Shown here piece by piece: positions 48,125 through 64,000 of a DNA stretch of 64,000 nucleotides. Position 1 is the first letter of the stretch. Every line of letters begins with the position of its first letter. The stretch is from Macrostomum hystrix (Eukaryota; Animalia; Platyhelminthes). A program made the position numbers and the translations under genes. The stretch is from contig CATNEN010000024.1 of NCBI GenBank assembly GCA_950097015.1, positions 2,914,001 to 2,978,000 on the forward strand, written 5' to 3'. The notes below the pieces were generated by a model. The model had not been told where the DNA came from and searched no databases. It saw only the letters and a program-made list of their open reading frames with translations.

Positions 48125-49069
48125 GTCGATGGTGAACCTAAGCGCTGTTTGTCGACAGGGTTCGTATTCTATGCGAATTTTCCTCTAGCCCACTTCATAT
48201 CTTTTCCTTTTTCCTTCTCTCGGCACCTTTTTAATAATCTTACAGCACTTGTAGCTGCTATGTGTGTCTATAGATAAGCAAAGCAGAAAATGTTATATAG
48301 GAACAAGCAATTGTTTGAGCTCCGTGCATGAGTCTGCATTTAAGCAGGGGGTGGGGTTCGCAGGAAAGAATTTGGCTGTATGCGATGCCAAAGCAAAGAA
48401 AAGAAGCAAAAATTGCCTGCTTGCTTGGCACGCTGGTCACTCTGGCAGACGCACAATGGCTTGGAGAACTGTCGCAGCCGCCAGCCTTCATCTGCCACTG
48501 TGTTCGGCAGGCCTCTAATCTAATACATTGCACCAATAACTCATGCGCTCCTATTGCTCGAAGCCTCACACACCCAAGCATTTGACCCGAGTGCGCTCGA
48601 CCTCCCTCCCTACCTTTGGCACCTTCCGCCCTAACTATATAGCCACTGCTGAGTTCGATCGAACGAACGCGAACTCTCAAGTTCTCAGTTGGAGACAGGA
48701 CGCCAGTCATAAAATTAGTGGAATGGCGGTGGCGCACTTAATTTTAGCCCCGCTGTCGTAGAGTGCAATGAATTTCGACTTTGCGACAAGACTTTCCCTC
48801 GCAGTTCTAGCAATCGAAAATGTGTTTTAACCTATGGCCAACCCTCGCTTCAGCCTAGCATTTTAGGTACGCGTAGCAAGCAAAGGGTTAGCTTGCCAGT
48901 ACGAGCGTATTTGTAGTATGCCAAGTATTTACTTTCTGTTAAAACTTTCCACGATTGCACTCTATGTCCTTATTGCTTTGCCTCATCCAGTTCACCCCCT
49001 TAGACATTTCTGTACTCAATTGTTTGCTCCAGCCAAGGAAGCATCTTTTTTCGCTCCACTCCAGATTCA

Positions 49070-50360
49070 TCTTCTCTAAATCCATCTACTCTAGATTCAT
49101 CTACTCTAAATCCATCCACTCTAGATTCATCTACTCTAAATCCATCTACTCTCGATTCATCTACTCTAAATCCATCTACTCTAGATTCATCTACTCTAAA
49201 TCCATCTACTCTAGATTCATCTACTCTAAATCCATCTACTCTCGATTCATCTTCTCTAAATCCATCTACTCTAGATTCATCTACTCTAAATCCATCTACT
49301 CTAGATTCATCTACTCTAAATCCATCTACTCTAGATTCATCTACTCTAAATCCATCTACTCTAGATTCATCTACTCTAAATCCATCTACTCTCGATTCAT
49401 CTTCTCTAAATCCATCTACTCTAGATTCATCTACTCTAAATCCATCTACTCTAGATTCATCTACTCTAAATCCATCTACTCTAGATTCATCTACTCTAAA
49501 TCCATCTACTCTCGACTCATCTACTCTAAATCCATCTACTCTAGATTCATCTACTCTAAATCCATCTACTCTCGATTCATCTACTCTAAATCCATCTACT
49601 CTAGATTCATCTACTCTAAATCCATCTACTCTCGATTCATCTACTCTAAATCCATCTACTCTAGATTCATCTACTCTAAATCCATCCACTCTAGATTCAT
49701 CTACTCCAAATTCATATACTCTAGATTCATCTACTCTAAATCCATCTACTCTAGATTCATCTACTCTAAATCCATCTACTCTAGATTCATCTACTCTAAA
49801 TCCATCTACTCTAGATTCATCTACTCTAAATCCATCTACTCTAGATTCATCTGCTCTAAATCCATCTACTCTCGATTCATCTACTCTAAATCCATCCACT
49901 CTAGATTCATCTGCTCTAAATCCATCTACTCTCGATTCATCTACTCTAAATCCATCTACTCTAGATTCATCTACTCTAAATCCATCTACTCTCGATTCAT
50001 CTTCTCTAAATCCATCTACTCTAGATTCATCTACTCTAAATCCATCCACTCTAGATTCATCTACTCTAAATCCATCTACTCTAGATTCATCTACTCTAAA
50101 TCCATCCACTCTAAATCCATCCACTCTAGATTCATCTACTCTAAATCCATCTACTCTAGATTCATCTACTCTAAATCCATCCACTCTAGATTCATCTACT
50201 CCAAATTCATATACTCTAGATTCATCTACTCTAAATCCATCTACTCTAGATTCATCTACTCTAAATCCATCTACTCTAGATTCATCTACTCTAAATCCAT
50301 CTACTCTCGATTCATCTACTCTAAATCCATCTACTCCAGATTCATCTACTCTAAATCCAT
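49070..50360. repeat. Minisatellite, 30-bp unit TCCATCTACTCTAGATTCATCTACTCTAAA (dimer of a 15-mer)
   Basis: Explains the SKSIYSRFIY and RVDESRVDGF ORFs. Confidence 0.97.
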
Positions 50361-51340: not shown

Positions 51341-52870
51341 TATAAGCTAAAAGGAACCTTGTGTTCTAGTTAACGCCCCGTGATATTTTAGCCAATCTCC
51401 TAATTAAATACTTAATTATCTCAACAATTTAACCAGTGAGTCGAAGCCAGGCGGTTGGCACGGCGGGCGCAAGTTCGAACCTGGCCCTAAAGAATCGAGC
51501 ATTATCAATGTGCTTAACTCAAATTTTATTTAATGAGCGAGAGACGAAGGCAGTTTAAAAGAGAAACATTATTTTCATTGTGAATTAAAAGCAGAAACAT
51601 TGGCCTCTCGGAGAGACGCGCCGGCGCACAGCGCGCCACACTAAATAGGGCTGGGCAAGGCCGACCCCAAGAGGGGCGGCCCCGCGACCAGGCAACGTAC
51701 ATGCACCCCGCACCAATGCACAAGCCCCCAACCCCCCGGTTTAACCTCCAACCAAGCTACGCTCGGTCGGACCACTAAATTCCAAATTGTCTGTTTCGAA
51801 AGCTTTTAAAAATCGAATCTGGAAATCGGAAAAAAAGTTTCCATTGTTCGTCGAAGTTTTAATGTTCGATTTATACTACTGAAGTTTTTAATTCAGTAGC
51901 TGCACGGCAAAATATGATAGACTTTCTACACTAAAAGAAACTAGCTCTGTGTTCATACAGACTTTTTAAACGTAACAGACTTTTTTAAACAAAAAAACAA
52001 GACTTTTTAAACAAAAAAGAACAGGAAATTAAAAATTTCACTGTGTCGTTAGAACCATCTGGATAGCGAAAAATGACAACTTCTAAGCGCTAGTTACAAG
52101 CTGACAATGTTAATGTAAAGCTGTGCAACTTTATGCAGTACTGTTAGAAACTTGCGATGAAAAGACATCGAAAAATAGAAACTTCAAAGTGTGGCTTTGC
52201 AGTGAGTGATAGCAGTGAATATTTGTATTGAGAGGAAAGCATTGCCAAGATGATTGCGACATCGATATGGTCAAGCCTGATAGATAATTTTATGAAAAAG
52301 CATGCCAAATATGCCGAGAAACAAAATCGGAGAATGCACATTTTTCAAATGAAAGACGCGAACTTGGCGGGAGTCGAGGTTTCGATGGACTTTAAAAAAT
52401 AATAGAATCTGGATGTACGAGTAAAAATAAATGTAACAAAAATGACTGTCAATGACTGTAGGTGGAAACAATGTTGCACTCACCCAAAAGGCTGTAGTGC
52501 CAACACTCAATGAAATAATTTTCGGTGAAGTCTGTACAGAGAAAAACTATCCTTTAAGGGCTTAGATTACAAAAGAATAGTACTAGAGCCTGCTATTCAA
52601 TTTTTCTCGTCAAATGAGTGTCGGCTTGTGGCTAGAATGCATGCTTTAATATCTACTTGTAGTGCAATAGTAAAGAGTGCAAATGCGTTTTAACGTTTAT
52701 TGTACACAATGATGCGCATTAGAAATACGAAGATCTTGAAGAGCAGTAGTAGACCTTGTCATGCAGGTCTTTTTATACCAGAGAGAAGCGCGTGTAGAGA
52801 GCGACCAGAGAGATAAGAGAGATGCAGAAAAAAGTTAACTTCTGATTAAGCATTCGAAAGGACAATTTCC

Positions 52871-53963
52871 TTATCTTGAGCCTGTTCTGAAGTAAAACTG
52901 CCTGGTCAGCTTGCTTCGCATGTCCGGCACCTGGAAGAGCTTGGAGCCGAACTGGTTTTCCAGCGGACTGCGCGAGATGTGCGCCGTCACTCGAGTGTGC
53001 AGCTGCAGCAGGTCCTCGCTAGCCCCGTGAGCTTCAACTATGCGGCAAAGGGTGCGGACGTAGGCTGACCCGCTCTGCGGGTCCCTGTACGCAATGTACT
53101 TCTCGCTAGTCGCGTAGCCAAAGAAAAAATCGGCACCCTTAGGCGCGAACAAGACGCCCCCAGTGTCTGGCTCCTCCGCTGACGAGTCGTTCGCTTCGTC
53201 ACCTTCGTCTCTATCGCCGTCGGTTGCCGACGCAATTTTATCTGCCGATGCTCCCACGGCAGAAATTCGCGCGGCCGCAAAGTTTCGCTGCTGGCGCTCG
53301 CCTCGGCAGGCCTGCGTTAGAGCGGAGGGTCTTGCATAATGTATTCCGAAGATCTCAATACCTGCTCATTACGATCCCTCTCATGTGGGCTTCGTGGGTC
53401 TTGATGGATATCTGATCATGTGTTTCATAAAGCGAATACGCATCTTACTAAATGTTTTTTGCGAAAGTTTTTCTAGAAATCCGAGCCGTAGCAGTCACAC
53501 TGATAATTCAGCATGAGCAATCCAACATCTTGAAGTTACCTGAATAAAGAACAGTTTCGGTTTGCCAGCCAGTCCCGCACAGACGTCGCTGTCGAAAAAC
53601 GAAGCGATGCGTCCCAGGCTGATGTACTGCCCATCTGAGCCCACGATTTGGTTATTTGTGCCGTGGGACATCAGGAAGCAGATGAAGGAGTCATATTTTT
53701 CGTGATTTTTTAAAGCGATACGCATGGCCGCTTTGCAGATGCCTGAGGCTGTGGGGTCGGCCAACGAGCGTACCCGGTAGCCCAGGCGCTGAAATAGACG
53801 GCTCGCACGGGCAACGTCTGCCCGACTGCCGTTTCTGGTGGGGAACTCAGCGGGGTTGTTAAACTTTTCAACGTTAACAAGCAGGCAGTATCCATGAGGA
53901 CGCTGGCAGTGAGGATATGTTGTCGACGAAGGTAGACTGTTTATCGATTCGAAAAGCCTCTCT

Positions 53964-54002
<39 letters not shown>

Positions 54003-57000
54003 GGCTGCTGCTGCTCAGCGGTCTCATTGCTGGCACACTGCAAGACTTGATCATCAATTGAACCACCATGAGCAAGCTTCTTGTTTGAGCCCTTCCACGC
54101 TTCCCTCTTTATTGTGTGCCAGGTTTCAATGTCATGTGGCTGCTTCTGCTGCTGCTGCTGCAGAATCTGTTGTTGAAGCCTAGGCGCTAGCAGTGGAAGC
54201 CTTTGTAGGAAATGGAATTTGAAGTAGAATGGATTTAGTAATTTAGCTTAAAGTTTAATGTTTAGGTACGCTCTTAAGTCAGGTTTCTATGTTTAGGTAA
54301 ATTCTACCTTATTGGCGGTTGCTGCTGCTGCAACGGAGGCTGCTGCTGCTGTTGTTGTTGATGGCTCTGCTGCTCTCGATTCTGAAGCTCGGCTTGCGCC
54401 AGCGAATCAGAGACTGTGCGCTGACGAACCAGAGAGGGCCTTTGCCTTCGACAGCTCGAGCAGCGACGCTCCAATCTAGGTCTATTGTTTCTGAAGATTA
54501 AGTTGACAATGTATCTGTTTGTAACACTATTGTTATTTTTGCTTCAAGAATTCAGCTACGCAAGCTTACTGGAAGAATGGCAGAGTCAACAGACGCTCGA
54601 TGCCCGGACGCCGCTCTCGCCGACGCTGCGTGCACAGCCTGTAGAGCTCGCACAGCGCGGCAGAGCTAGTCCCAGGCAGGCTAGGCATCGCACCAACACA
54701 GATGCTGGTGTGCAGGCGATCGAAATTTCTACTCTGCTCCGCGTTCGGCGGTTGTCCAGTTGTCAGCTCGAACACGAGGCAGCCGAAGGCCCACACATCC
54801 GACTTGGTGGTGAACTCGGCGCCGCCAGAGTGTAGAATCTCCGGTGCCAAGTAGCAGGGCGAGCCCCACTCGCGCGGACGAGCCGAGTGCTGCTGGCGTG
54901 TACACAGAGAGAAGCCGGCCAGTTTCAGACTGCCCTCTGGCTGGTATAGGACGCTCTTGCACTTTACGTTGCGGTGTACCACCGCTGGGCGCAGATCGTG
55001 AAGGTACAGCAGGGCTGATGCGACCTGAGCGACGAAACGTAGGTTTCGAGTGTTGCAATCTGAGGACTGCTCAAAGACAGCTACTCAACAAGTAATAGGT
55101 GTTTAACTGGGGGCGAAATGCAAATATTTTAAAGTTTGAATAATTCAAATTATTCAAATTTTGAATAATTTTATAAGCGAAAGATAGTGGTTAGGTTTGC
55201 TATTTCATGCTGTTATGAGCGACTATTTTGATTGGTTTTTGTTGAAGTGAAGATTACTTAAAATAGGCAAAAAAATCAATTACTACCTGGCGACCATAAG
55301 ATTTGATTTCGCTCTCCAGAAACCCAGCCTTTCTCTGCGTCAAAATTGAGCGCAGATTTTGGCCCTCGACAAGCTCCGTGAGCACCATCAGACAGCCTGA
55401 GCTTTCGCTCAGCACCTTGACGAGCTTCACTATGCGATCGTGCCTCAGCTGACCAAGCAGATGGCAGCTGGCCTTGAACTGTTTTAGCGTCTCCTCCGGG
55501 CACCCCGGTGTTGTTCTGTAAGCGGCAACCGGAACTCCTCGCAATTCGGCACAAAATACCGAGCCAAAACGACCCCGGCCAAGTAGCCGCTCTCGATCCA
55601 CGTTACAGGCCGCCGTCTCGTCTTCCTTCGTTTCGTCTTCCTCGACTTCCTCTTCGAAGCTCTCCTCTCTCAGAACATCCTCTGCGTCTTCCTCGTCGTC
55701 TGTCTGCTCGTAGTTGTCGAAGCATCGAGCTCCCGAATCCATATCGTCCTCGTCGTTGTCCAACTCCTCAGTGGCATCGCTCTGACCGAGGCGACGCCTT
55801 CTTGGTAGAAGCGGCTCCGGAGCGCTGGCGCCCCCAACAGAGCGACCAGGGCGATTTAATGGACAGCGGTCTGACTGAACCGGGCTTTGCGTCCGCAGCG
55901 GCGGTGGTGGCAGATTTTGATGCACTGGTGGTTGCTGGGCCAGCTGCGAAGGGGCCTGCTGCAGCTTCAACTGCCGCGGTGAAAGCTCGGCTCTGTTCGT
56001 TGAGATTCAGAGAAGACCGGAGTGAAGCTAATCGGATAATAATATTGAATTGTTTTCGAAGGTTTTATAGGAAACACAATGGAGCTTGTGCATTTTATCC
56101 TTATTGCACAATATCTCTAAAGTCTCTTCACATTGGCTGGAAAAATTTTCTCATGAATCTTACGAGCATCCCAAAGGCCTTCTAAGCCAAGGTTAAAAGT
56201 TCCTCACTGAAAGAAATCATGCAGCATCAACTGCCCAATCGCTGTCGGTCGTCGCGCGGCGCACGAGCTGCACAGTCTGCGCAGCAGCGGCGTCGATTCC
56301 TCCGGAGCCTCCCGTTGACCCGCTTGACCGGTGGCCATCTCGATCAGGAAACTGCCGAACTGACGAACATCTAGCGCCGTGTCGCAAGCTTCGCTGCCGC
56401 CGTTGCTCTCTTCGAGGCGACAGCAGAGTGTGAAGCCGGCTAGCTTTGCGCAGCCGGAGTCTGTTAGTAGGGCTGAGCGGCACTTCACATTGCGGTGCAC
56501 AATGGCCGGACTTCGGCTATGCAGGTAGTGCAGAGCGGACCCGATCTGTGGGTGAGGGTGAGAATAAACGACGCTATTTGAATCCAAAGCCAGCGGGATG
56601 TTGAGCGTAAACTCACCTGTCTACCATAGACAGCAACAAACGACTCAGCCAGGCAGCCGTATTTGTCAACAAGGTCGCGCAGGCTCCCAGAGCCAAGCCA
56701 CTCCAGCAGGATGCACACAGAGGCTGCGCTCTCCGAGTCTCTCGCCAGGGCGATGAGGCGCACAATGTGATCGTGCCGCAGTTCGGTCAGAATGCCGCAG
56801 CCGGCGAGCAGCCTCTTGTCTGGCTTGTCGGCGCAGTAGACTGCCGCGGTGCCAGCATCTTCACCGTCGCAGCCGATCCGCACCCGGAAGATTCTGCCGA
56901 AGCGACCCCTTACCGGCGACGCCTGCTTCGGATCCGGCAGGCAGCGAAATTGGCGACCATCCGAAGTCAGCAGTTCCAGAAAACTGCCACCTTTTTCTGA

Positions 57001-57003
57001 CAT
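52871..57003 (-). CDS. Tandem pseudokinase-pseudokinase-polyQ-caspase fusion protein (~1056 aa, 7 exons)
   Basis: Exons (-): 57003-56617, 56545-56208, 55992-55287, 55024-54570, 54490-54308, 54200-53540, 53311-52871. All introns are GT-AG with phases 0,2,0,2,2,0, and the sum is 3171 nt = 1057 codons with no internal stop. Kinase 1: RGRFGRIF..HDHIVRL..YGRQ|IGSALHYLH..VHRNVK..KLAGF. Kinase 2: LLGRGRFGSVF..HDRIVKL..YGRQ|VASALLYLH..VHRNVK..KLAGF..YLAPE..KSDVWAFG. Caspase: PHGYCLLVN, TRNGSRAD, FICFLMSHG, GKPKLFFIQ|ACRG, ADFFFGYAT..AYRD..GS.YVRTLC. Confidence 0.85.
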
Positions 57004-58826
57004 GACTAGCGGAGAGTTTAAAAGTACCCGGATTGCACTTACACTGCAACTTTGCTGTCCCTCTCTTGATATAACCGCTCACTCATAAGCGATAGTTAGC
57101 TGAGCACTAGAATCGAGTAAGCGAGATGCGAGTCATGTGCTTCTCTCTCTTAAGCGAGCTCTTCTCTGTCATCCACTGCTCAGATTGGATCCACGCTGCT
57201 TCTCAAACAAGGCTCTAAAAATAGCACCTGGTGGGGCTGCACAACAACAGAAAAGGAAAGCACTGGGAGACCCCAAAGACAGACTCCATTTGTTGCCTGG
57301 GCATTGCACTCAGCTTATTGGTCTGGTCTGAGCAAACTGAAAACACAAACAATGAATAGAGTCATGCACATTTGTCCTAGCTTGGAGGCCTGGAAACAGT
57401 CCAGGCTTGTTTGTTCGCGCCTACCTTCTACCCATCGTGTTTCTTCCAGTTTGCCCTGACTGAAACTTTCGTACAATTATTTCCTTAATTCAGGTCTGTA
57501 TCCATTTCCAAAAGCTCTTTTTCCGGGGAATTGCACCACTCTGACCCAAGCCCATGGATTTTGCTGCCTCGGTTAAAACAAAAGAAACACGAAGAAAACA
57601 AATTACCCTGACAAAATAGTTTGTTTACACTAGCCGTATTGCCAACCAACGATTTGACTCACAGTTAGAACGAGCTGTTGCAAATATCTATCACGCAGCA
57701 GGAAATATAATAACTAAAGCAAGAAGTGCACAGAGTTAACGCTTGTGATGCCGCAAGGTCATGTATAGACTTTCGATTTATTTATCTCTGCGAATCATAT
57801 CCTTTGTCCATTGTGTTAAAGAATCTCAATGACAATGACAATGCGCCTAATAAATCAATGAGAGGTCAAAGTTCATTCTACTTGTATCACACTACTTTTT
57901 TGTAAGTAGCATATGTCAGATAAAAATGACCGTACTATGACTTAGAAAAGTGACTTGCACAGTTAAATTGAATCTTCTTCCGATGCTAAAACAGCGGACC
58001 AAGAACAACAAAATGGTGCAGCAACAAGGGTGAGCTAAAACTCTACAGGTGTGAGGTTTTGCTTGCTAAGCACAATTTAAACACATAGTATGCTGCAGAG
58101 ATCTACAGTTGTATAGGATAAATAAAAGTTTTTAAGGACTAACGTGATCTACGCTCGAATAAATACAAAAAACTATATTTTGAGAAGAAACGAAACTACA
58201 AATCGTTTTTGTGCAAGTGTAGGTGCTTCAAATATCGACTGTGACAGTAAAGTGTGTCGCTCGTATCAACAAGATTAATATAAGTTAACAAAATGAAGCT
58301 TACGGCCTGAAAACTAGGCGACAGAAAAATATATAGAAGCAAACGACGCATGAAAAAAGACATGAATAATTTGAATCTGAAACTCGATGGAAAATTCAGT
58401 TTTTGACTATCAAATTTCGTCATAAAGCATAACGTATTGAGGCCTGGTCAAATCGGGCAAATTCCAAGCAGCTTTCTTCTCAACAAAAAAATAAATTGCA
58501 ATGTTTACAAAAAATCCGCTTTTACGCTAAGCTAGACTAAATATGAGACATTGTGCGAAATATTTACATACAATAATTTTTCGTATAGCGCTTTTTATGA
58601 TAAATTTTAAATGAGGATTTAGTCACTATGGGATTCTGCATGCCATAAAAGAATGCTACAGCAAAGCTTTGTTTAACAAAAAAGTAACAAAATAGACTAA
58701 ACAGACAATAGATTATTTATTTTATTGCATGATTTGATTTGAGAATCAACTAACAAAAAACTTGCAAAGCCTAGGTTTTGAACATTGTCCAACTCAAAAT
58801 CGACATCCTCCTCAAGGTTCTTGGTC

Positions 58827-61800
58827 TCACAGACTGGCAGCCATCGGGTTCATCTGCAGCTGCGGATTGGGCGAGCCGTCAATCTCGGGAATCTCCATGC
58901 GAAACATGTCCTTGATGCGCTGGTTGAGGCAGGGATTTGGGCAGGGGTTCAGGTATGAATTTGAATTTGCATTCGCACAAAAAATTATAACTATAGGCAC
59001 TGATATAGAATAAGATATGGTTTACTTCAATTAACTGATCATGCCTTTGAAATGGAGTTTAAAACTAGCCAAGATTTACATTATGCTCTATCCTGTGAGA
59101 CAACTTCCAAAGGGACAAAGCATCGGCATCGACATCGAGATATTAAAAAATTCTCGTCGGGGTGTCTGGTGGCAAAACCTTGTCACTAGGCTCTTCGACG
59201 AGAATTGCTGAATTGCCTGAATATGTCGACGATGCTGACGTCGGACGGCTTTGAAAGTTATTTCAACGTAAAATGCGGAAAATGTGGATCCATATGGAGG
59301 ACTTAAGCAAAAATCGGTCATTCGGTATGAGAAGTGAAGTAGGCAGTGGGTTTTTGAAATACCCTTATTGTCTTTACCCAGGGGGAAAATAGCGTGGTTT
59401 TTCAACTGTTAATGGTCCTTCGAAAGGCTGTGTACAGCTCCGTTGTTAGAGCTTCGGACTTTTACCAGAGGCGTCGGATGTTCGAATCGCGTCTCAAAGG
59501 AAAGTTAAGCTAGACACAATAGTTTCCTCAACTGCTTCAGTTCACCCAGCTGTAAAATGGGTAACAGGGGCATAAAATATGGATATATAGGCCCCGGAAT
59601 AGCCCTGGCTGTTCCTTGGCTAAAATTACCTTCGACAGTGGCTCATTGTGCTTGTTGTCGGACCAGCATAGCTGCCTAATGGCATAGTACACGGCATAGA
59701 TGGGTATGGCTATGACAGATGACAATGCCAGCATAGCTCCCAGGGCCTGCGCCCAGGGTGGATAGTTGTAGGGCTCGGCTGTGGAGCGGGTGTAGACCAG
59801 CGGCTTGAACTCCAGAACGGCGAAGGCGAGAACACCCTGGGAGCGTGTTTTTGACACGACGAACATTTTCAAAAATTTCCATGACCGCCGTTCTTTGCTA
59901 AATGCCAATCACAAATGAGAACGAGCGCTCTTTTCTGTAAGATCTGGGGGTAGATCATCATCATGGAACTAAGGAATGAGGTAGATTATCATCATGCAAC
60001 CAAGAAATGAGGTAGATCATCATCATGGAACTAAGGAATGAGGTAGATCATCATCATCGAACTAAGGAATGAGGTAGATCATCATCATAAAACTAAGGAA
60101 TGAGGTAGATTATCATTATGCAACTAAGGAATGAGGTGGAGTATCATTGTGGAACTGAGAAAAGCATACATACTCATGTTACGAATAAATTTGAACGATC
60201 TTTGAACGTGTTCAAACAGCGATCTGGGGGTAGATCATCATCATGGAACTAAGGAATGAGGTAGATTATCATCATGCAACCAAGAAATGAGGTAGATCAT
60301 CATCATGGAACTAAGGAATGAGGTAGATCATCATCATCGAACTAAGGAATGAGGTAGATCATCATCATAAAACTAAGGAATGAGGTAGATTATCATCATG
60401 CAACTAAGGAATGAGGTGGAGTATCATTGTGGAACTGAGAAAAGCATACATACTCATGTTACGAATAAATTTGAACGATCTTTGAACGTGTTCAAACAGG
60501 GCTTAAACTCTTCAAGCAGTGATCAGTTCCGATGAACTCACAAGGCAACTCAGCGGGCACAGAACCGTGACGCAGATCTGCCAGATGATCGGTGGCGCAT
60601 GGCCAATGACCATTGTCATCTTCTTGCGCAGGCGAAAAATTCCTGTAAGTAGGGAGTTACAAAAAAACTGAAATTTACCTGAAATTAACCCTGACACGTT
60701 GAGCAGTATAAAGCATCTGGCTCTCACGAATGGCCATGAGTTCAAAATGTACAGTAAACTTCCAGACTTACGGTCAGAAATCCGATTAAAACGGTTAACA
60801 GTAGAAAGACGACGGGGGTATTTGAAATACCCTCATTTTTATTTCTGTATCTCCCAAAAGACAAATAGCCATGAAAATGCAGAACACAAGCAAAATTTTC
60901 CTGATTAATAAATATGATAAATCTGATTAAACAACTTCCACAATCACAAAACATCGGCATCGTCGAGATATTCAACAATTTTCGTCGGGGTGTCTGGTGG
61001 CAATAACCACCAATATACGAGTAGGCTGCTCAAAGAAATTTCATGTAATCATGTCGGCTATCATTCTTGTCATTTTAATTTTTGAACCAGCGTGGATTTA
61101 TTTACCATCGACGTTTATACAGAGCAATGTTACTTGTCCTTGTCACCAGGGTCTTCGACAAGAACCGCTGAATATCTCGACGATGCTGACGTCAAACGGC
61201 TTTGAAAGTTAGCTCATCGTAAAGGGCGGAAACTTTTGATCCATATTATTGACTTTCACAAAAATCGGTCATTTGGTTTGGGAGCTGTCGTGAAGTAGGC
61301 AGTGGGTATTTGAAATACCCCGGGGGGTAATGGCGTGGCCTTTCTACTGCTAACAGTTGAAACAGATTGTTTGGAATGATGCAACTGAAGCGACTGGATG
61401 TTGTGGTACTCGTACAAATCTTATTAGAGAATTTCACTAGTCATTTCGAAGCGTTTCAAATTGAGTGAATCTTCAACGCGGCAAACGTGCATCTCGTTTG
61501 ATGCAGTTAAGTGCATCTGAAATTACTGAACTGGTTCTGTTGCGATCGTCAAGATCCAAAATTTGAAGTGGAGTTCAGTTCTGAATGTTTACCAAACGAC
61601 CAGGCGAAGGCGATGCATTCGAATGCAATCAGAAGTAGGAGGGCCGGGCCACTGGCGGCGTAACTGTCGAACATGTTGAACACATAGGCGCCACCCTGCG
61701 GTATTGCAATGACAGATGAAAATGATGCTTCAAAGTCTAGGTGAGAGCGGGTACCTCCGATTTACTAGGGATCCTAACCGGTGAGATAAAGATGGCAATC

Positions 61801-64000
61801 AACATTAGGACTCACATTGCTGACCATGGAAAGACCGATGACGAAGGAGACCATGCAGACAACGAGGACAAACTTTTTTCTGTGCACACGCAGTATGGGC
61901 CATTCGTCCATCACGGCCGTGATGAAGCCCTCGACTGTACAGAACTGCAAACATGAGCATTTTGCGATTCGTAATTTTGTAACACCCAACAATAGCCCGT
62001 AATTACATGCGGAATTGAGCTGCAGTGCCCAAGTGAGTATCCCCTAATGCTTACCTGGCTATCGATGCCGACAAAGAAGACCATTAGGAAGAACAGGACG
62101 GCCCATATTGGAGCGGCCGGTAATTCTGACAGGGCGGATGGGTAAGCCAGAAAGGCAAGGCCGGGGCCTACAAGGGAGAAATAGGGTTTCGAATGTCACT
62201 GAATGTGACATTCAGTTTGATGTCACAGTCATTCAGTTCGATTTCACAGTCATTCAGTTTGAAATCTGTGACTGATGACTTTGGCACCTGCCTGAAACCG
62301 ACACAATACATCGAAACTGGTCACATTTCAGCTGAAATGAATCACGCAGCAAGCATTCCGTCGAGCCTGCTAGTCCCCAGCCCGGCAAATAACCCTGGAT
62401 TTTTCCATGACAATCACGCTGCTGATCTACAGAAGCATCAGAGTTCATTTTACTTCAATTTTCAAGCACTCAGTAGATAATAGATGCTCACAATGGCTCT
62501 CAACGAGCCTTGGTTCTATTGAAGAACAATAAAATCTGACCTCTTAACTCCATCTCTAATTAGATTCCCTACTCATCGGGCTCACCTGACGCTGCCACCT
62601 GACTGACGTGCTTCTTCTGCGCCTTGGCCATGAATCCGATGACGGAGAAGATAACAAAGCCAGCGAAGATGCTGGTGCAGGAGTTGATGGTGCCTACTAG
62701 GAGGGCATCTCTGCGGATTGGGGATGACGGCAGTTGAGGCTGTGTGGGTATCTGTTCGCGATAGCTCCGCTCCCCACTCAATTCTCTCCAGCGCCTCTTC
62801 CCCTAAAGCGAAATATCCCCCTTCAACGCGATCCCCAAAACCCAGGCCAGGACGCAGTGAAGCGCAGAGTCTGAGCCAGCCGAGGCACCTGGCGGAGCTG
62901 ATATGAGTCGCTTGACATTGAGCACAGCTCTGCGGGCTCTAGCAATGAATTATAGCGATGGGTTGGCCATAAGCCCTGGCATTTGCATATGGGCTGCAGC
63001 TGCGGCTGTGACTGAGAGCCAGCAGTGAGACAGAGCAGGCAGGCGAAACCCGGGGATGGGGCTCAGTCAAAAGGAATTCACGATTACCTGGAGGGTTGGA
63101 GGGTAGGGGGGCCTTCTGTCGCCGCCCAAATCCTGCCTAAGCTGTGGAAGCGGCTGAAGAGTTGCAAAACAGAATCGCTGCCAGAAGCAGAGTATATTGA
63201 CAATGGGAACTCTAAGCATAACAAAACGCATGCAAAAAACACCCGACTGACTATCAAGGCAGTAAAAAAGCACAATTGGAATAAAACCAGGCCAGGTGGA
63301 GGGAACTTATGTAGCAGCAATGGTGAGCAGACAATTATAATGAGTCAATTTATATTTTTTGCAATCTTCAGAGAATGATAGTCGCTCACTTATAGCAGTT
63401 GTTGGTTAGCGGGTTATAGCTGCCCAGAGCGATGTGCGTGCCAAGGCCTAGTCCCAGCGAGAAGAAGATCTGAGAGGCCGCCTGAAGCCACACCTGCGCG
63501 TGCAAATGTTCTTCTTACAAATTAGTTGCTCTAACTGGGAAATAATTGATTGAGTGTATTAGGTTAGTCAGTTTATACCTTGGACTCTTGGATTTTGGTG
63601 AAGTTCGGCTTCAGATAGTACTCAATTCCAATACTGGCGCCATCCAATGTGATGCCGCGGAACAGCAGGATAATGAGCAGCACGTATGGGAATAGAGCTG
63701 TGATGTACACGATCTGAGAAAGGGTTTTGCGGATTTCTGGCCAGTTATAATGGTATTAAGGTGCTAATCTAGTATGTATTTTGGATCCTAAATGGTATTT
63801 AGGATGCAGCCGCATTCATTTGGGTTGCCACGTTATTTTACCACGTCATTCGATGATGTAATAATTAATGAGTCCATCTCAAGCAATTAACTGCACCAAC
63901 CTTGCCGGTCCATTGCACACCCTTGAAGATGCAGAAGTAGCAGATGATCCAAGCGATGCCCAGCGTCAACACCAGCTGCCAGCGAAGCACTCCAGGCTCG
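58827..64000 (-). CDS. SLC6 sodium/chloride-dependent neurotransmitter transporter (GAT/taurine/creatine subfamily), 3' part; the 5' end lies beyond the window
   Basis: Exons (-): >64000-63901 ([20 protein letters not shown]), 63713-63579, 63493-63390 ([21 protein letters not shown]), 62710-62586 ([15 protein letters not shown]), 62167-62055 ([15 protein letters not shown]), 61944-61816 ([16 protein letters not shown]), 61695-61593, 60642-60542, 59836-59630 ([11 protein letters not shown]), 58919-58827 (stop). All phases are consistent. Confidence 0.92.
59085..59368. mobile_element. Family C element, internally deleted copy, SLC6 last intron
   Basis: The left-arm end is joined to the right arm, terminating GGGTTTTTGAAATACCC. 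Confidence 0.7.
59440..59575 (+). mobile_element. Degenerate SINE family B-related fragment
   Basis: GTTAGAGCTTCGGAC..GTTCGAATC..CTGCTTCAGTTCACCCAGCTGTAAAATGGG. Confidence 0.65.
59941..60499. repeat. Near-identical 280-bp tandem duplication containing short GGAACTAAGGAATGAGGTAGATCATCATCAT repeats (SLC6 intron)
   Basis: 59941-60219 matches 60221-60499 with about one mismatch seen. Confidence 0.93.
60813..61325. mobile_element. Non-autonomous foldback/MITE-like element with long imperfect inverted arms and palindromic ends (family C)
   Basis: GGGTATTTGAAATACCC occurs at both ends, and both arms carry CATC(G/A)GCATCGTCGAGATATTCA in inverted orientation. Confidence 0.75.

Follow-up and report, generated by a model that had tools for sequence, protein, structure and literature searches.

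The minus strand of a 64,000-nucleotide (nt) stretch of the Macrostomum hystrix genome (contig CATNEN010000024.1, positions 2,914,001 to 2,978,000; hereafter the window, to which all positions refer) carries, between 57003 and 52871, seven exons that probably belong to one Macrostomum protein-coding gene. The predicted product is a caspase of ~1056 residues with two kinase-fold domains, K1 and K2, as its pro-domain (Table 1). Exon joins were read by eye and then rebuilt by script, which reproduced what an earlier note on this DNA had proposed: seven exons, six GT-AG introns of 71–262 nt and an in-phase frame without internal stops. Introns 1 to 6 measure 71, 215, 262, 79, 107 and 228 nt, all six run from GT to AG, and the joined coding sequence comprises 3171 nt (1056 codons plus a stop codon). 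Across the seven exons the coding frame contains no stop besides the terminal codon, and the other two frames contain 32 and 34. G+C content (GC) is 0.54–0.62 in the exons versus 0.30–0.49 in the introns. The linker exons, including the acidic, Pro/Gln-rich part of exon 3, follow the same codon-position order as the domain exons (GC1>GC3>GC2) and are open in the coding frame only. Upstream of the start codon, an in-frame stop lies at 75 nt, with no further ATG between.

Both kinase open reading frames (ORFs) seem to end in a stop, FFQ*. The earlier note had explained these stops as splice donors, and the sequence agrees: they are a TGA and a TAA made by phase-2 donors at 56208/56207 (CA|GTGAGG) and 54570/54569 (CA|GTAAGC). 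A GTRAG donor in phase 2 always reads as a stop, so the FFQ* stops are no argument against splicing. Pfam profiles, run on exons singly, detected Pkinase / PK_Tyr_Ser-Thr in exons 1–4 and Peptidase_C14 (PF00656) in exons 6–7, and exon 5 gave no family match; the resulting order of kinase fold, linker, kinase fold, poly-Q and caspase is the one previously described, with kinase profiles in both domains and PF00656 above cut-off. Profile coordinates continue over introns 1 and 3 (Pkinase ~101|108 and 106|107) and over intron 6 (Peptidase_C14 125|126), which provides independent support for these three introns. None of the plus-strand ORFs of the region matched a Pfam family, and those antisense to the exons (225, 116 and 88 residues) were set aside as antisense artefacts of GC-rich coding DNA.

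Table 1. Exons of the predicted kinase-caspase gene and the intron at the K1-to-linker join (window coordinates).
Feature	Position	Strand	Remark
Exon 1: start codon (57003–57001) and K1 N-lobe	56617..57003	-	Pfam weak as single exon; CSK alignment
Exon 2: shortened K1 C-lobe	56208..56545	-	Ends in phase-2 donor CA|GTGAGG
Intron 2: 215 nt, GC 0.38; predicted K1-to-linker join	55993..56207	-	First bases create FFQ* stop
Exon 3: linker (residues 242–373), then K2 N-lobe	55287..55992	-	First in-frame Met is M326
Exon 4: K2 C-lobe	54570..55024	-	Pfam Pkinase 82.5 bits; phase-2 donor CA|GTAAGC at end
Exon 5: basic, Gln-rich linker, 61 codons without ATG	54308..54490	-	Coding frame alone open
Exon 6: poly-Q linker and caspase large-subunit part to Gln of QACRG	53540..54200	-	Pfam Peptidase_C14 93.1 bits
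Exon 7: ACRG, Asp-rich intersubunit linker, small-subunit part, stop codon (52873–52871)	52871..53311	-	Pfam Peptidase_C14 60.5 bits

K2 is recognised by the kinase profiles, with 38.4 bits in exon 3 in addition to the exon 4 score in Table 1. The single exons of K1 reach 21–26 bits, near the cut-offs; with a profile made for the Macrostomum kinase clade described below, from an alignment that itself includes K1 and K2, the K1 score rises to 207.6 bits. K2 residues were assigned by alignment to STK25, WNK3, EphA3, CSK and paralogs from Macrostomum lignano. The β3 Lys is replaced by Tyr400, the αC Glu by Ser417, the HRD Asp by Asn496, the catalytic-loop Asn by Ser501 and the DFG Asp by Gly514, so that the motifs read HRN and GFS, with the APE motif retained at 537–539. 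K1 was compared, using the CSK alignment, at the four catalytic positions that could be aligned, and has Y56 for the β3 Lys, N148 (HRN), S153 in the catalytic loop and G166 (GFT for DFG). K1 also lacks the activation segment, the APE motif and part of the C-lobe. Gly-rich loops are present in both domains (VRGRFG at 31–36 in K1, GRGRFG at 380–385 in K2), and K2 keeps the fold-defining motifs, namely the G-loop, APE and the αF sequence DVWAFG. The residue set of an active kinase is absent from both K1 and K2; the paralogs P0007, P0098 and P0122 retain the β3 Lys, HRD and DFG. Given these losses, K1 and K2 are pseudokinases, without the residues needed for phosphotransfer, and the alignments to solved kinases and M. 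lignano paralogs uphold the earlier description of both domains as catalytically dead.

The best match of K1 anywhere is K2 (BLASTP, 37% identity, E 2e-31; next protein, E 7e-17), and the two are sisters in a maximum-likelihood tree with support 99/98. The K1/K2 pair thus arose by internal duplication of a two-exon module. As the sister domains share the same losses, the module was already dead when it was duplicated. Since then K1 has evolved about twice as fast as K2 (branch lengths 1.41 vs 0.75). Among solved structures, the nearest kinases are STK24/25, WNK, PAK and NEK7. The catalytic-loop region of both domains, LH-x-R-x-PA-[IV]-VHRNVKC (56460–56530 and 54950–55020, minus strand), is most like that of WNK kinases (FLHTRTPPIIHRDLKCDN) among solved structures, and the HRDxKC form is common to the whole Macrostomum kinase clade.

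The protease domain is preceded by ~780 residues. Both of its exons score well above the Peptidase_C14 cut-off of 21.4 bits, and their profile positions, 2–125 for exon 6 and 126–233 for exon 7, abut at intron 6. The closest solved structures are caspase-3, to which exon 6 was aligned (p20 part, E 1e-22), and caspase-7, to which exon 7 was aligned (p10 part, E 7e-14). The catalytic pair aligns as H869 (SHG) and C912 (QACRG, split Q|ACRG by intron 6), and the Arg-Gln-Arg of the S1 aspartate pocket as R812 (TRNG), Q910 and R986 (AYRD). By these alignments, the caspase retains all residues that Asp-specific cleavage is known to require. The intersubunit linker contains seven Asp at 934–959, which are possible self-cleavage sites.

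No in-frame Met lies between M590, in K2, and M849, in the p20 part of the caspase. Any ATG from K2 up to the caspase domain starts an out-of-frame ORF of just 8–42 codons, and at each acceptor the frame is closed by a stop 15–75 nt upstream, with no ATG between. The caspase part cannot start alone, as its exons supply no start codon. Of the three frames, only the coding frame is open through exon 5 and the 5' part of exon 6, and codon-position GC there is like that of the domain exons; from K2 to the caspase, 79 and 107 nt separate the coding parts. In flatworms, the spliced leader ends in AUG. Because exons 3, 5 and 6 all begin inside a split codon, at its last base, translation from such an AUG would run in the wrong frame and stop after ~67 (exon 3), 2 (exon 5) or 6 codons (exon 6).

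Over the p20 part, identity to the M. lignano ortholog model, P0159, is 84%. The model lacks a start Met, its first residue falls precisely on the first full codon of exon 6 (FPLVTPRLQQ vs LPLLAPRLQQ), and it shares the ...|ACRG acceptor. Its start looks like that of a 5'-truncated model of an internal exon. Compared with 53540–53644 of the window (minus strand), P0159 has 35 residues fewer, from VGSDG to FFIQ. The gap is equivalent to use of an internal GT at 53644 (ATC|GTGGGC) joined in frame to the ACRG acceptor, and may reflect an error of annotation or else an alternative isoform without the Gln of QACRG, in which case the isoform would probably be inactive.

RNA searches matched one small run, X1, for the whole stretch, which contained 0.05 of the query words and was compared over 52400–57400; a second search with 53540–55024 matched no run. 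X1 contains a single exact contig of 236 nt at 55289–55524, within exon 3, which stops 2 nt before the last base of the exon at 55287; introns and flanks within 52400–57400 have no coverage. Of the transcript proposed in the earlier note, transcription of exon 3 is weakly supported by this contig, and none of the six junctions is crossed in X1; we infer the joins between K1 and K2 and between K2 and the caspase from the genomic sequence. The remaining X1 pieces were rejected as CAG-repeat or paralog matches with 3–5 mismatches in ~36 nt, and apparent joints at 54162–54341 as poly-Q repeat artefacts. One 561-nt contig matches only over 37 nt (3 mismatches), at the KLFFIQ codons (53539–53575). 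Beyond them it reads ACRGSEYDKG, which marks it as the transcript of a paralogous caspase and not of the window gene.

The nearest real relatives of the kinase part are M. lignano proteins with ~33% identity. K1 and K2 fall within a clade of 14 rows (support 96/91), all other rows being from M. lignano. Its members include the ankyrin (ANK)-kinase-kinase proteins P0007, P0098, P0122 and P0090 and a group comprising P0158, P0016, P0012 and P0002. This kinase clade, found here only in Macrostomum, also gave rise to ANK-kinase-kinase proteins and to proteins with two kinases, a dead caspase and ankyrin repeats. In the P0007 gene, the first kinase runs into the second inside a single exon, and in each kinase a phase-0 intron directly follows Y-x-x-Q and precedes αE (L001 4378/4461 and 5405/5473). 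Introns 1 and 3 of the window gene lie at the same codon and in the same phase, and this shared position suggests an intron that marks the Macrostomum kinase clade.

P0158 (1178 residues) consists of kinases at 65–333 and 348–613, Peptidase_C14 at 653–837 and ankyrin repeats at 963–1051; its paralog P0016 (UniProt A0A1I8GSE8) has 891 residues. In both, the caspase His and Cys are lost (SGS, QARNR), while the kinases retain DFG and one retains HRD. By these motifs, they are the mirror image of the window gene, with its dead kinases and live caspase, and the two types could work together as regulator and effector. A search with the P0016 caspase region for kinase-caspase proteins returned P0016 and P0158 only, and a search with P0159 returned no further M. 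lignano relative. The P0012 locus was discarded as a kinase-caspase candidate: its gene encodes two kinases, and neither caspase nor ANK exons lie within 10 kb of it.

The evidence for the K2-caspase link is fairly strong, though indirect, and that for the K1-K2 link is weaker, consisting of phase, family precedent and the 83 codons ahead of M326, which are open and coding-like. We regard fusion of K2 with the caspase as very probable, and the inclusion of K1 in the fusion protein as probable.

Upstream of the caspase gene, also on the minus strand, lie exons of an SLC6/SNF sodium:neurotransmitter symporter (59537–62781), the last of which ends near 59537. About 2.5 kb of AT-rich DNA separates this gene from the caspase-gene start codon. 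Downstream is a minisatellite (49058–50360; 30-nt unit, 43 copies, 94% matches), which is strongly C-rich on the plus strand and creates long spurious ORFs on both strands.

The reading that we favour, with moderate confidence, is a single fusion gene in which the dead kinases serve as a CARD/DED-like module for binding, recruitment or dimerisation. Several points weigh against it. The domain-linking introns 2, 4 and 5 are outside the reach of the profile-continuity check, X1 holds one 236-nt piece of the gene and no contig crossing a junction, and M. lignano P0159 is annotated as caspase-only. A phmmer search with exon 4 against 1.84 billion representative proteins returned no ortholog of the kinase part and nothing above 45% identity; the matches at 44–45%, P0091 and P0104, are plant lectin receptor kinases and not orthologs. 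K1 is shortened and fast-evolving and could be decaying, and the binding or dimerisation role of K1-K2 is something we purely infer. The same RNA and annotation results favour two or three separate genes or cistrons, with K1 ending at the TGA at 56207–56205 and K2, with or without the caspase, starting at M326, perhaps via spliced-leader trans-splicing at the exon 3 acceptor; the seven-exon fusion would then be a modelling artefact. Macrostomum does use trans-splicing and operon-like units, M326 is located before K2, and with the introns retained both kinase ORFs end in real stop codons. A caution over chimeric predictions has also been published (PMC11463336). However, the first in-frame ATG of the caspase exons, M849, is inside the domain, only short out-of-frame ATG ORFs follow K2, and the 79–215 nt between coding parts leave no room for a promoter. 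A spliced-leader AUG would be out of frame at exons 3, 5 and 6, and the 83 codons before M326 resemble coding sequence and are open in the coding frame only. P0159, for its part, lacks a start Met and begins at an exon boundary, and the two kinases of the paralogous P0007 gene form one exon-continuous polypeptide. We therefore consider separate genes unlikely.

Two further explanations concern what the kinase folds do. The tandem pseudokinases might, as the earlier note suggested, act as decoys, mimicking host kinases hit by pathogen effectors, or as sensors of a small ligand, and directly release the caspase, on the pattern of plant tandem-kinase resistance proteins or the RIPK3-MLKL switch. 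This idea shares its gene model with our favoured reading, and both Gly-rich loops are retained; in Macrostomum, the parent clade has expanded and kept its catalytic motifs intact, which would supply plausible kinases to mimic. Immune expression, diversifying selection or a ligand lend it no specific support, the β3 Lys and DFG Asp are both lost, which usually weakens nucleotide binding, and homology to plant tandem-kinase proteins and MLKL goes no further than the general kinase fold; a decoy or sensor role is distinctly unlikely. The kinase folds might instead be decaying passengers on an ordinary caspase, with an N-terminus that is cut off or irrelevant, or the whole gene might be becoming a pseudogene. 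Loss of every catalytic kinase residue, the truncation and long branch of K1, the poor conservation of the low-complexity poly-Q and acidic linkers relative to P0159 and very low expression in X1 would fit such decay. Yet 1056 codons, 241 of them in K1, are free of stops and frameshifts, K2 keeps its G-loop, APE and αF DVWAFG, and the caspase is 84% identical to its M. lignano ortholog, which makes decay very unlikely.

Initiator caspases become active once their pro-domains have paired two molecules, and pseudokinases typically act as dimerisation or docking modules. A pro-domain of ~780 residues before a complete caspase indicates an initiator-type enzyme. Under the fusion-gene reading, K1-K2 would bring two protease domains together as CARD or DED do elsewhere, possibly with an active paralogous kinase of the same clade as partner, and the caspase would then cut itself in the Asp-rich intersubunit linker. 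The logic would be that of RNase L / IRE1, in which dimerisation of a (pseudo)kinase switches on a C-terminal enzyme, the output here being a caspase. A wider proposal makes the protein a single-chain initiator caspase gated by its pseudokinases, which would act with the P0158-type mirror paralogs and the ANK-kinase-kinase family in a death or defence circuit specific to Macrostomum; this proposal is speculative and improbable. If it were true, a protease would read a kinase signal directly, without death-fold adaptors, as an animal counterpart of plant tandem-kinase or RIPK3-MLKL logic. Caspases are normally recruited via the death-fold domains CARD or DED; flatworms would have replaced these more than once, by ankyrin repeats and by kinase folds. 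The locus offers a clean genomic example of a kinase-fold caspase pro-domain, with paralogs that display the reverse pattern of loss. RNA interference works in Macrostomum, and if complementary DNA confirms the fusion, the gene would be a tractable case for pseudokinase control of a caspase.

The kinase-caspase architecture is not new. PMC11463336 (2024) describes one caspase with a kinase-like pro-domain from M. lignano, placed as sister to the flatworm ANK caspases, and one from the earthworm Eisenia andrei; it cautions that such cases may be chimeric predictions and, for the M. lignano protein, gives no accession, residue analysis or functional work. Together with the UniProt kinase-kinase-caspase-ankyrin proteins P0158 and P0016, this report overturns the earlier claim that kinase-fold pro-domains were unknown among animal caspases. 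Two clusters in the ESM Atlas, which we treat as leads only, combine Pkinase with Peptidase_C14: a eukaryotic (Arthropoda) cluster of 92 members (~672 residues) and an actinobacterial cluster of 91 members (~718 residues). A literature search on the arthropod kinase-caspase cluster found nothing. The Macrostomum kinase-caspases are thus of a known but uncharacterised kind, and the window gene is an incremental addition rather than a new system. It adds a second, distinct Macrostomum gene lineage of kinase-caspases, a predicted live caspase joined to two dead kinases, and genomic evidence (phases, no independent start, shared intron) against an annotation accident. Confirmation of the fusion by complementary DNA would mean that the single published mention is not an annotation chimera.

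P0158 and P0016 resemble the window gene most closely: they come from the same genus-level lineage, place a kinase fold N-terminal to Peptidase_C14, have kinases of the same clade and share the KPKLFFIQA motif. They are, however, only ~30% identical, and so not orthologs, and carry C-terminal ankyrin repeats that the window gene lacks. The flatworm ANK caspases (PMC11463336) likewise have a protein-interaction module outside the death fold as pro-domain, in their case ankyrin repeats rather than a kinase fold. All catalytic and S1-pocket residues of the window caspase align with caspase-3 and caspase-7, whose pro-domains are short; the ~780 residues of the window protein are as in an initiator-type caspase. 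MLKL is also a pseudokinase switch in cell death, but its pseudokinase follows an N-terminal four-helix bundle, whereas the window protein contains only kinase and caspase domains by Pfam, with the pseudokinases N-terminal to the effector. Plant tandem kinase resistance proteins contain tandem kinase folds with dead members, at least one active kinase and no protease. Both kinases of the window protein are dead and attached to a caspase, and their nearest relatives are Macrostomum kinases; neither the plant proteins nor MLKL share descent with the window protein. RNase L and IRE1, finally, provide a working analogy only: a kinase fold, without catalysis in RNase L and with it in IRE1, lies upstream of a dimerisation-dependent enzyme. 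That enzyme is a C-terminal KEN/RNase domain in RNase L and IRE1 and Peptidase_C14 in the window protein, with no homology beyond the kinase fold.

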